DNA of 64,000 nt, taken from the sequence record NC_061441.1; one strand, written 5' to 3'. A program made the translations under genes and the position numbers. The notes beneath the pieces are model-generated. The model was not told the DNA's origin. It did no database searches and saw only the letters and a program-made list of their open reading frames with translations. Each line of letters starts with the position of its first letter. Position 1 is the stretch's first letter. Positions 15,113 through 19,442 of the stretch are shown here, one piece after another.

Positions 15113-16381
<1,269 letters not shown>

Positions 16382-16439: not shown

Positions 16440-18971
16440 ATGGCGAAAACGAACAACAAGGCTGAGAAGAAGGCCGAGAAGAAAGCTAAAGTCAAAGCTC
16501 TGAAAAGCGGAGAAAAGGCAGTAGCTTCTGATGATATCGGCGGCGTTGAAATTCAAGGCTTCGACCTCGCAAGTTTGATGGACGATGTGCTTGACGGCAT
16601 CGAAAAGAAAACGAAAGTAAGTTCGCAGGATGCAGCGCGACACGCACCGCGTATCTCAACAGGCTGTCTGGCGCTTGACATGTATTTGTCTGGCGGTATC
16701 GTACCTGGCGGTTGGTACACATTCAGCGGCGGTGAGCAGTCATGTAAGTCAACAATGACCATGAGCATTATGGCGAGCCTGATTCGTCTGAAATACTCTG
16801 GCATTAGCGTAGTGTTCGACTACGAAGGTTCAACCGATGCCGAGTACGTTGCTGGTCAGTTGAAAACGTTCGGCGTTAAGGTCGACCCGAAAACTATCTT
16901 CGGTGTGCGTGACGATAAAGACGGTAGCTGGATCGTTAAGCCTAAGATCCGTTACTACGCACCAGACAACGGTGAGCGCTTCTTCGATTATATGTCGATG
17001 CTGCGTCGTCGTCTGCCTGACAAAATCGTTGAGAAAGACGGCACCGCGTATTACATCTTTGAGAACAACAAAGAGAACGCGAAGAAGCTGGCAGGCAAGT
17101 ACGATAAGAAATGGTTCAGCCGTAACAACCAGTTCAAAGTACCTGCGCCAGACGGCCACATGCAGGCGATGGTTATCGTTGACTCCTATCCTGCGATGAT
17201 GCCAGATCAGGTCGATGACGATGACGGCTCGAAAGCAATGGCGCTGCAAGCGCGTATGTTCTCTGACGGCATCAAACGTTTCCGTGGCGGTATGCGTCGT
17301 AAGATGATGACTATCGTTGGCGTTAACCAGTTGCGTCAGAAGCCAGCAGTAATGTTCGGCAGCCCGGAGTATGAGCCTGGTGGTGATGCGTTGAAGTTCT
17401 ATTGCTTCGACCGTGACACTCTGATTCGTACTGACCACGGCGTATTGACTGCACCGCAGATTAAAGCGCTGATGGACGAAGGCAAAGAAGTTGCCGTTGA
17501 GTCGTTCGATGGTTATCAGAAAATCAACGGCGCATGGCTTGTCAATGACGCTCCGTTCCCGTTCGAACTGAATGCTGGTGGTCATGTGTATGTTGGCTCG
17601 GCCGAACATCGCCAGTTCACGTTCATGCACGATCTGACTGCCGAAGGTACTCCAGTTCTGCGTCCTGAATGGAACACGCTGAATCAACTGGCGCAGTACC
17701 CAGAGCAGAAAGGTCAGTACGCTGGTCTGCGTGTACCACCAGTTAAGGAACTGAAAGAGAATGTTCCTGACGCCTTCGATGAAGCCTCACAACTGGTAAG
17801 CAATCTGCTTGGAAACTGCGACCCTGTTAGCAAGCAACTGCCGCTGGTGACTCACGGTGATACCACCTACGCTGCAAACTGTCTGTTCATCGACACTGTG
17901 GGCGAAGACACCGACACTGGTTCGTTCTCGTTCTGGGTAGAGAAGTTACTGGCCATCGGCGTATTTGCTTACGCTGACGAAAGCGGTATCTGGATTCCAG
18001 GTCTGAACAAACACGAACTGGAAGCGGCTGTAGCGCAGGACGAACTCGGTGCGTTTGCTGGTATCAGTTTTGAAGCGACCTGTCGTCAACGTCAGACTCA
18101 AATGCTGACCGTGATTGTCGATCACTTCCCTGAGCTGGTACGTTACGTTCTCGACTATCAGTTGCAGACGGGCGAAGACAAAATCTACCTGGCGCCTGAG
18201 AACGACTTCGCACAAGCGCTTGACCTGATTCTGCACAAAGAGATCGCTGGTTACGACGACTACTATGACCTGCTGATGTTCCAGCTGGCGTATGTCGATG
18301 ACTGGTACAACTTCGATTCCTCAATTCTGCCTGTGCCGTTTACGCTTCGTGCGCTCAACGAACAGCGTGAGTTCTGGGACGTGAACGTTGAAGAAACGTC
18401 GGTAGTAATCACCAACGGCTTCGTCAGTCACAACAGCGACGTGCGTGTGCGACTGGCTTCTCGTGCGGTACCAGAAGGCTGGCCGAAACTGAAAGATGCT
18501 CCTGGCATCGTCGGTGAGAAGTCGGTAACAGTTGAAGGAGGTACTGACCGCTATCGCTTCATCGCTGCTAAGACCATCAAGAACAAGATGGGCGGCATCC
18601 CTAACCAGCAGACGTGGTTACGTTTGTGGGAAGCTGACGGTAACGGTGAAGCTCGCGGTTTCGACCCAGTGTTCGATACGTGGCACTACCTGAAAACTCT
18701 GGGTCTGGTCAATGGTAGCCGTAAGTCGTTCAAGCTGAAAGCTCCGTGCCCGCTCGCATCTGATGTTAAGATGGATTGGGATGACTTCCGTACACTCATC
18801 AACGGCAGCAAAGAACAAGTTGTTGGCGTGTGTAAGAAACTGAAAGTCAAACCTGCGGGCCTGCGTCTGTGGTGCTTCAAGTTCGTTCAGTCCACTAAGG
18901 GCAACGAAATGTTGAAGAACGCAATCAGTAAGTCTGCCAAGAAGTCTGATGACGACGACGGCGACGAGTAA
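16440..18971 (+). CDS. recA: RecA/UvsX recombinase containing an intein
   Basis: ISTGCLALD..LSGG, Walker A GGEQSCKST, VIVDS, VNQLRQ, PGGDALKFY|SDVR, KTIKNK; 843 aa, 499 aa after splicing. Confidence 0.92.
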   Translation: MAKTNNKAEKKAEKKAKVKALKSGEKAVASDDIGGVEIQGFDLASLMDDVLDGIEKKTKVSSQDAARHAPRISTGCLALDMYLSGGIVPGGWYTFSGGEQSCKSTMTMSIMASLIRLKYSGISVVFDYEGSTDAEYVAGQLKTFGVKVDPKTIFGVRDDKDGSWIVKPKIRYYAPDNGERFFDYMSMLRRRLPDKIVEKDGTAYYIFENNKENAKKLAGKYDKKWFSRNNQFKVPAPDGHMQAMVIVDSYPAMMPDQVDDDDGSKAMALQARMFSDGIKRFRGGMRRKMMTIVGVNQLRQKPAVMFGSPEYEPGGDALKFYCFDRDTLIRTDHGVLTAPQIKALMDEGKEVAVESFDGYQKINGAWLVNDAPFPFELNAGGHVYVGSAEHRQFTFMHDLTAEGTPVLRPEWNTLNQLAQYPEQKGQYAGLRVPPVKELKENVPDAFDEASQLVSNLLGNCDPVSKQLPLVTHGDTTYAANCLFIDTVGEDTDTGSFSFWVEKLLAIGVFAYADESGIWIPGLNKHELEAAVAQDELGAFAGISFEATCRQRQTQMLTVIVDHFPELVRYVLDYQLQTGEDKIYLAPENDFAQALDLILHKEIAGYDDYYDLLMFQLAYVDDWYNFDSSILPVPFTLRALNEQREFWDVNVEETSVVITNGFVSHNSDVRVRLASRAVPEGWPKLKDAPGIVGEKSVTVEGGTDRYRFIAAKTIKNKMGGIPNQQTWLRLWEADGNGEARGFDPVFDTWHYLKTLGLVNGSRKSFKLKAPCPLASDVKMDWDDFRTLINGSKEQVVGVCKKLKVKPAGLRLWCFKFVQSTKGNEMLKNAISKSAKKSDDDDGDE
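17403..18434 (+). mobile_element. Intein (344 aa) in recA
   Basis: Starts with Cys (CFDRDTLI) after ALKFY; block B SAEH; block F FWDVNV; ends SHN followed by Ser; extein motif KFY-SDVR is restored on removal. Confidence 0.92.
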
Positions 18972-19013: not shown

Positions 19014-19442
19014 ATGCGCACTCAAATCTATACGGCTGATATCGTCAATCTGGAAACAGTGGTCGTTGACGAAGAAGGTCAAGAGACACGCAGTCCGACA
19101 ATCGTTCCTAATCTCGAAGGCGAACGTGATCTGACTGTTAGCACTCTCGGTACTATCATGGCTACCGTGACCGCTGAACCAAATCCTGACGCTCGCATGA
19201 TCGTTCTGGTGTCACGCGCTCTGTTCCCTGCTTTCGCAGACCCTGAAGGTGACCTGTTCGATATCTTCGATCCGATCGAACGTGTTGCTGATGTTGTTGC
19301 TGGAAACGTCGGCAGCATTCTCGGTATGCAGGTAGTAATCAACGATAAGTCCGACGACAACGTTCTGGCTATCGCTGATGTTCTTGATACCGAAGCTGGC
19401 GTTACTATTCGCACCTTCGGCGCTGCGCTCGTTCGCGCGTAA
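19014..19442 (+). CDS. Hypothetical acidic protein
   Basis: GGAG RBS, 142 aa. Confidence 0.75.
   Translation: MRTQIYTADIVNLETVVVDEEGQETRSPTIVPNLEGERDLTVSTLGTIMATVTAEPNPDARMIVLVSRALFPAFADPEGDLFDIFDPIERVADVVAGNVGSILGMQVVINDKSDDNVLAIADVLDTEAGVTIRTFGAALVRA

Follow-up and report, generated by a model that had tools for sequence, protein, structure and literature searches.

Among described inteins, PhoVMA (PDB 7qst; Beyer & Iwai 2022, PMC8966425) is a full-size, fixed intein of an essential ATPase that retains a degenerate endonuclease, in which the catalytic Asp residues have been lost, one LAGLIDADG block is truncated, the electrostatics are changed and DNA binding is weak. Its two alpha-beta halves are both kept, the endonuclease could be reactivated by active-site grafting, and it could be deleted with splicing retained (PMC8966425). 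The intein of P. horikoshii RadA interrupts a recombinase of the RecA family within its ATPase core, where intein-extein contacts time the maturation of the recombinase and splicing is induced by single-stranded DNA (ssDNA) (PMC5238726, PMC4513877). Here we describe an intein that interrupts the gene for a UvsX/RecA-like recombinase in a 64,000-nucleotide stretch of sequence record NC_061441.1 (the whole of which is called the window below), which has 100% identity to the jumbo phage pEa_SNUABM_16 of Erwinia amylovora. We consider it likely that the intein is old and fixed and that what is left of its endonuclease has been retained because both splicing and folding rely on it, a relationship known as HINT-HEN mutualism (HEN, homing endonuclease).

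The phage intein is like PhoVMA in being full-size and fixed and in retaining a degenerate endonuclease, but a four-helix bundle replaces the second half and is the best-conserved part, and the sequence family is an unrelated one that is not seen by Pfam. With the RadA intein, which is the model behind the reading of such elements as sensors, it shares the location in the ATPase core of a RecA-family recombinase, whereas the RadA element is a mini-intein without an endonuclease remnant and its regulation works through contacts between extein and Hint domain. The Mtu RecA intein also interrupts a RecA-family recombinase and resembles the phage intein in the fold of the splicing domain (2imz_A, Z 15.7, root-mean-square deviation (rmsd) 2.7 over 132 residues); however, the mycobacterial RecA inteins occupy another insertion point, and a profile search of PDB sequences found no detectable sequence similarity between them and the phage intein. 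The M. leprae site is VMFG|SPE, the position of the intein called A below, and the M. tuberculosis and M. leprae sites are named RecA-a and RecA-b, respectively.

The intein and its splicing domain

The insert, which an earlier note on this DNA had called a RecA intein, comprises residues 322-665 of the open reading frame (ORF; window 17403-18434, 344 amino acids (aa)), starts with Cys, ends with His-Asn and is followed by Ser. It is an intein as stated, but the protein that it interrupts is a UvsX/RecA-like recombinase of a phage and not the RecA of a bacterium. The N-extein could be aligned through ...GGNALKFY of E. coli RecA, which puts the insertion directly after the equivalent of Tyr218, 9 residues past loop L2; to our knowledge this is not a described RecA intein site. 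Alleles without the insert occur in Dickeya phages JA29 and JA33 (Salmondvirus, 501 aa) and in phage NCTB (503 aa), where the sequence reads ALKFY|SDVR, and because these natural empty alleles join at this very point, the boundaries of the intein are exact and the insertion site named in the note is confirmed.

The splicing motifs proved to be as intact as had been proposed: in alignments of 13-25 sequences, reaching down to about 29% identity, there was no variation at C1, S66-x-x-H69 (SAEH), D326 of block F, H343, N344 or Ser+1. Block B carries Ser, not Thr, and C1 is the only invariant Cys of the intein family, with no conserved second Cys for a redox trap. In the AlphaFold2 model of the intein (predicted local distance difference test score (pLDDT) 88, predicted template modelling score (pTM) 0.87), residues 1-92 and 306-344 form a Hint fold that matched the solved inteins NpuDnaB, NrdJ-1, VidaL and Mtu RecA at Z 15-17 in VIA-align (for NpuDnaB, Z 16.9 and rmsd 2.0 over 129 residues). 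The model had 29 chains at a Z of at least 8, those shown being nearly all inteins or other Hint-superfamily domains, and the best Foldseek matches to the whole model were the endonuclease-bearing inteins PI-PfuI, TliVMA, PhoVMA and PI-SceI. The element is a genuine class-1 intein, and from its invariant catalytic residues and its location inside the ATPase core we infer that the 843-aa precursor would undergo protein splicing.

Neither the curated intein models (Pfam PF14890 and the Hint families) nor PHROG matched this intein, Pfam gave no match in 12 relatives either, and across 13 members of the family Pfam returned sub-threshold noise only (for example, CUE). A profile of the 13 sequences recovered no solved intein from the PDB sequences, where the one match that it gave below 0.01, to a helical bundle designed de novo, is not meaningful. 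Against 1.84 billion cluster representatives the same profile retrieved 5 clusters, all of them phage RecA proteins with an insert at ALKFY|S, and the family is confined to this lineage of phage recombinases. The missing Pfam match is a trait of the models, not of inteins as such.

Structure and charge of the central domain

When the central domain was folded alone (pLDDT 82.5), residues 121-219 formed the same alpha-beta-beta-alpha-beta-beta-alpha arrangement as in the context of the whole intein, an arrangement that resembles one half of a LAGLIDADG endonuclease. In VIA-align these residues matched WhiA (Z 6.8-7.1), I-DmoI (5.8), I-Vdi141I (5.1), I-CreI (4.5-4.7) and PI-TkoII (4.4); the 30 best Foldseek rows for the central domain were nearly all I-CreI or I-MsoI, at a weak E of ~0.04; and the neighbors found with the language model of the ESM Atlas were viral LAGLIDADG_3 clusters (score 0.88). 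Each of these lines is weak when taken singly, but they are mutually consistent. WhiA (DUF199), the best structural match (8dy9_I, Z 7.1, 86 residues), is a known case of a LAGLIDADG scaffold kept after catalysis was lost. Unlike the phage remnant, which has one half and is poor in Lys and Arg, it retains both halves, is basic and acts as a DNA-binding transcription factor by means of an added helix-turn-helix, and at a Z below 8 the match reflects fold resemblance only.

Of the two LAGLIDADG helices, each of which should bear a conserved catalytic Asp or Glu, only helix 122-138 could be recognized. It carries LVSNLLGNCD, and D140 stands at the catalytic Asp position; in relatives this residue is K, G, A or a gap, and it is not conserved even within the genus. 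The two-half beta-saddle was not found either, as residues 220-305 were modeled as four helices with no beta-strands, and Pfam LAGLIDADG_1, _2 and _3 gave no match in the intein or in the family members tested. These results bear out the earlier claim that the endonuclease region is degenerate. Two LAGLIDADG vestiges had been named: LVSNLLGNCD does lie in the LAGLIDADG-like half, whereas LVRYVLDYQLQTG (residues 245-257), a possible relic of block E, sits in the four-helix bundle. Since the second saddle half and a conserved catalytic Asp are both missing, an active LAGLIDADG enzyme of the usual type is very unlikely. The central domain is probably not an endonuclease, its nuclease activity being presumably absent, and most likely it no longer binds or cuts DNA. 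The conserved polar residues of the intein are R110, E116, Q229, R230, D240, Q294 and D300. Fold searches with the helical subdomain returned polyprenyl synthase helices and the N-domains of sigma factors and integrases at Z of no more than 5.6, below the level that is meaningful for helical bundles, and these candidates were rejected.

The acidity of the insert, for which the earlier note had counted about 34 Asp/Glu (D/E) against about 10 Lys/Arg (K/R), was essentially right: 32 D/E and 12 K/R were measured for intein residues 100-294, and 33 and 11 for residues 110-304. The whole intein has 54 D/E and 21 K/R and an isoelectric point (pI) of 4.34, as compared with 9.35 for the exteins, and its central 213 residues have 35 D/E and 12 K/R (pI 4.18). 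Similar values (pI 4.26-4.69) were obtained for 14 phage inteins at ALKFY|S. When set against the 80 ORFs of the window, of which 12.5% have a pI below 4.5, the net charge per residue of -0.10 to -0.11 falls at about the 10th percentile, the K/R content (5.6-6.1%) lies below the 5th percentile, and the D/E content is at about the 75th-80th percentile. The acidity is therefore real yet not extreme for pEa_SNUABM_16, and it comes mainly from loss of Lys and Arg, not from an excess of Asp and Glu. The accompanying generalization that active intein endonucleases are basic was only roughly true here; inteins of this family with intact endonuclease motifs have a pI of 5.6-9.3, and the real separator is the K/R content, 12-13% in these versus 6-8% in the remnants.

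The charge does not place the intein among DNA mimics of the Ocr, ArdA or AcrIF7 type, as it reaches only about the 10th percentile, and the charge density is about half that of Ocr, a classic DNA mimic. AcrIF7 (7jzx_J, 6m3n_A) was matched by phmmer at E 0.07 over 64 ungapped residues. Because the family profile did not recover this match and the fold searches did not show it either, we regard it as a chance match driven by composition.

Allelic variation and selection

A search with the N-extein gave 120 homologues, which were aligned to an intein-less member. Three intein sites were found within 15 residues around loop L2, with no more than 2 inteins per protein: an insert was present at VMFG|SPEY (intein A) in 8 homologues, at EYEP|C in 16 and at ALKFY|S (intein B, the site described here) in 99, while 20 had no insert. 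Two of the 99 inserts at ALKFY|S (P0103 and P0104, 458-459 aa) have intact endonuclease motifs (FVLGALAGDG and FLRGYLSADG) and a PF14528 match (E 1e-14 to 2e-15), with a pI of 7.3-8.1 and 12% K/R. The other 97, which are 239-421 aa long, lack any match on record to the LAGLIDADG families of Pfam; their pI is 4.3-5.8 and their median K/R content 7.6%. A search for PF14528 in three related phage records also found nothing. By size there are one insert of 421 aa, many of 317-356 aa, including the window allele, and others of 285-301 aa and 239-271 aa, and several of the shortest alleles (254-271 aa) have kept the helical subdomain and the C-terminal Hint part and lost the LAGLIDADG-like half. The block F/G sequence ..yD.n.P.T..i.TNG..SHN is common to all ALKFY|S inteins, including those with an intact endonuclease.

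The same shift was seen at EYEP|C, where forms with an endonuclease (393-398 aa, PT-HINT and LAGLIDADG_2, PF03161) have a pI of 6.3-9.3 and mini forms (138-179 aa) a pI of 4.7-7.1. Because an acid shift accompanies loss of the endonuclease at two of the three sites, acidity in this gene family is best read as what remains once the DNA-binding surface of the endonuclease has been lost, and it is not peculiar to the intein described here. The EYEP|C inteins belong to more distant phage recombinases (homologues P0080-P0110) and often co-occur with the intein of site B; the equivalent junction of the window is 17378|17379, where the allele has Gly at +1, not the required Cys. Intein A (349-350 aa, 14 codons upstream of intein B) is a canonical LAGLIDADG intein with a PF14890 match (E 9e-13), 41 K/R and the conserved motifs LNAVAVGDS and FAVFYMDDG. 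It occurs sporadically, in pEa_SNUABM_17, Yersinia phage fHe-Yen9-02 and several metagenomic contigs (loci L005:291-3866, L035:1071-2117), and the intein B of one carrier is 94% identical to that of the window. The identity between copies of intein A is 71-97%, about as for the exteins, and that of intein B in the same proteins only 39-82%. Intein A looks currently mobile.

Intein B, on the other hand, was found without exception in phage records with an N-extein identity of 76% or more. Trees of the intein and of the exteins agree in their clades, and the GC content of the intein matches that of its flanks. The extein tree has an unresolved polytomy at the depth of the intein-less Salmondvirus alleles, which may be either ancestral or the product of secondary loss. 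The intein has mostly been inherited vertically across related jumbo-phage genera.

Selection was measured by the ratio of nonsynonymous to synonymous divergence (dN/dS), given here as medians of pairwise Nei-Gojobori values from 10 phages, between whose genera dS is near saturation. The ratio was 0.07-0.08 for the exteins, 0.14-0.18 for the Hint parts and 0.19 for the whole central domain, within which intein residues 126-195 gave 0.22, residues 196-225 gave 0.28, and residues 226-305, the helical subdomain, gave 0.12 (0.12-0.14). In the 3 closest pairs, where dS is unsaturated, the central domain gave 0.07-0.10, and no segment or pair exceeded 0.8. Neutral decay is excluded by a dN/dS of ~0.2, and the earlier note, which had set simple decay against any new function of the remnant, was right to the extent that the remnant is not simply decaying. 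The hypervariable block of residues 126-195 gave no sign of positive selection, as its dN/dS was 0.06-0.76, never above 1, and its dS was raised too. Nucleotide identity over residues 130-190 (~17790-17972) falls to 0.53-0.67 with flanks of at least 0.9, for instance between pEa_SNUABM_2 and Alexandra and between pEa_SNUABM_2 and the window; as dS is also raised, this mosaic block suggests that intein segments were exchanged between co-infecting phages, not that diversifying selection has acted. Variation in the intein is greatest in the hairpins that would contact DNA, and the divergence at four-fold sites in several pairs is about 1.5 times as high in intein B as in the exteins (for example, 0.51 versus 0.34).

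Persistence of the remnant and its genomic setting

These results would be explained as follows. The intein would excise itself after translation, by attack of Cys1, trans-esterification to Ser+1 and cyclization of Asn344, and thereby yield a UvsX/RecA protein of ~499 aa, with the 344-aa intein set free. The LAGLIDADG homing endonuclease nested in the intein would have decayed to one alpha-beta half with no conserved catalytic Asp, the rest of the central domain being a four-helix bundle, and the loss of most Lys and Arg would have made the domain acidic. As a working recombinase would require the precursor to fold and splice, the remnant would come under purifying selection, in which destabilizing missense changes are purged, above all in the helical subdomain beside the C-terminal Hint strands. 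This may be called HINT-HEN mutualism or selection for non-interference, and the cause of the constraint would then be structural. There is precedent in PhoVMA, whose endonuclease is dead and has changed electrostatics, and in further inteins whose splicing depends on the endonuclease scaffold (PMC8966425), and the framework of the homing cycle with its known exceptions also fits (PMC1654191). Purifying selection on a dead endonuclease does not require repurposing, since the known mutualism explains it (PMC8966425). On present evidence the intein has reached a late and quite ordinary stage in the life cycle of such elements, and nothing points to a new function.

Several observations weigh against so simple an account. 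The helical subdomain is under tighter constraint than the Hint domain itself (dN/dS 0.12-0.14 versus 0.14-0.18), which is more than non-interference alone would predict. The remnant is of full size (335-356 aa) in all of the ~60 Alexandravirus, Y3, Snuvirus, Yoloswag and Rivsvirus sequences, though it has been trimmed elsewhere. Furthermore, acidic positions are shared to an extent of just 35-45% between members that are 14-33% identical, so that 55-65% have turned over, and the net charge of the central domain has nevertheless stayed at -13 to -23 in 7 full-length remnants (-8 in a shorter remnant of 155 residues), which hints at selection on charge as such. Because of the helical constraint, the net charge that was kept and the absence of trimming across several genera, we leave a modest probability to a regulatory role or a role in trans, although it is unlikely that the remnant has been exapted in the broad sense, whether to mask the basic DNA-binding face of the unspliced recombinase, to make splicing conditional on ssDNA or stress, or to act in trans as a DNA mimic or a regulator of UvsX or of the single-stranded DNA-binding protein (SSB). 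The steep charge contrast between intein and exteins next to loop L2 would suit such a role, as would precedents in P. horikoshii RadA, in which splicing is induced by ssDNA or DNA damage (PMC5238726), and in the Mtb RecA intein with its conditional splicing (PMC11377839); moreover, dN/dS is well below 1, and constraint on the helical subdomain equals that on some parts of the host protein. In its more specific form, with the four-helix subdomain as the chief part of a built-in recombinase regulator that shields the basic, DNA-binding L2 region of the precursor and couples splicing to ssDNA, or with the excised intein, made 1:1 with UvsX, modulating UvsX or SSB in trans, we hold the idea to be rather improbable. 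Against exaptation, the charge is at only about the 10th percentile of the ORFs of this phage and is produced by K/R depletion; acidity arose with endonuclease loss at another intein site of the recombinase family as well; other lineages have trimmed the LAGLIDADG-like half or are without the intein; positive selection has left no signal; and the sole mimic-like match, AcrIF7, did not hold. The earlier proposal that the remnant was repurposed as a DNA mimic or a sensor was therefore not upheld, as mutualism accounts for the selection, acidity tracks the loss of K/R, and shorter alleles do without the LAGLIDADG-like half.

Two further explanations concern how the intein moves. Intein B might not home by itself and might pass from one co-infecting phage to another through general recombination, or be co-converted when intein A homes, which would keep functional alleles in circulation and is compatible with persistence through mutualism. 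The sporadic distribution of intein A in close relatives, with both of its LAGLIDADG motifs kept as is typical of active homing, points in this direction, as do the mosaic block with its raised dS and the excess divergence of intein B at four-fold sites. We think it improbable as the main cause, however, because the intein and extein trees give the same clades, all known members of the clade already carry intein B, so that no empty targets are left to convert, and the raised dS may reflect base-composition or codon effects. It is scarcely credible that the domain is an unusual but working homing endonuclease, with its single LAGLIDADG half acting as a homodimer or with another active site. Purifying selection on the domain, the half that was kept, the presence of D140 in pEa_SNUABM_16 and the empty sites in sister genera would be expected of such an enzyme; but D140 varies within the genus, a second beta-sheet half is lacking, K/R make up 5.6% as against 12-13% in intact endonucleases of the same gene family, the intein is fixed and not sporadic across the clade, and the hairpins that would contact DNA are those that vary most. 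Mutualism between the Hint domain and its dead endonuclease remains the reading that we favor.

Positions of the features of the recombinase gene in the window are listed in Table 1.

Table 1. Features of the interrupted recombinase gene, by window position.
Feature	Position	Strand	Evidence or remarks
UvsX/RecA-like recombinase precursor ORF, 843 aa and stop	16440..18971	+	PF00154 E 1.9e-23; phrog_97 E 4.8e-75
N-extein, residues 1-321, ends ...GGDALKFY	16440..17402	+	aligns with E. coli RecA up to Tyr218; pI 9.2; dN/dS 0.07
Unoccupied VMFG|SPEY site of intein A, inside loop L2	17358..17363 (junction 17360|17361)	+	intein A alleles of relatives
Hint N-terminal part, intein residues 1-92, Cys1 and block B S66..H69	17403..17678	+	AlphaFold2 pLDDT 88; Z 15-17
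Linker strand and helix, intein residues 93-120, invariant A107, R110, E116	17679..17762	+	model and alignment
Putative single LAGLIDADG-like half, intein residues 121-219, most variable, mosaic part	17763..18059	+	VIA-align, Foldseek, ESM Atlas
Four-helix subdomain, intein residues 220-305, RQRQTQM, FPEL..Y, QLAYVDD; best-conserved intein part	18060..18317	+	model; dN/dS 0.12-0.14
Hint C-terminal part, intein residues 306-344, block F D326 and block G H343-N344	18318..18434	+	model, VIA-align, alignment
C-extein, starts SDVRVRL, Ser+1 as nucleophile, including stop codon	18435..18971	+	empty alleles; dN/dS 0.08

The recombinase ORF is 100% identical to the pEa_SNUABM_16 gene labeled 'UvsX-like recombinase', and the gene directly upstream of it encodes a gp32-like SSB (phrog_15004, 15113-16381, + strand), which has a low-complexity tail of more than 100 residues with blocks of poly-Asp/Glu that alternate with poly-Lys. 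Immediately 3' of the recombinase, at 19014-19442 (+ strand), lies a small and very acidic ORF (142 aa, pI 4.05), which is labeled 'hypothetical' at the equivalent place in most of the relatives inspected. The same jumbo-phage SSB-recA block, with identical scores, was met in two records under other names, PV550095.1 ('Alcaligenes phage Afa-NA1', 78 kb), in which the recA coding sequence reaches base 1, and PV359490.1 ('Salmonella phage Sen-NF', 108 kb). Rather than complete genomes of the phages named, both seem to be fragments of a jumbo phage of the Erwinia type or contigs assigned wrongly.

About 50 GenBank records of jumbo phages name the 843-aa gene 'UvsX-like recombinase', 'putative RecA protein' or 'hypothetical protein', an intein was annotated in none of the records inspected, and we found no published description of the ALKFY|S intein in the open-access literature. 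An intein that is invisible to Pfam has thus so far gone unannotated in jumbo-phage records. Within one family of phage recombinases, a single site displays the homing cycle stage by stage, from an intact endonuclease through a large dead remnant and trimmed remnants to the empty allele, and this allelic series is a natural test system for the persistence of dead endonuclease domains and for the need of the helical subdomain in splicing.

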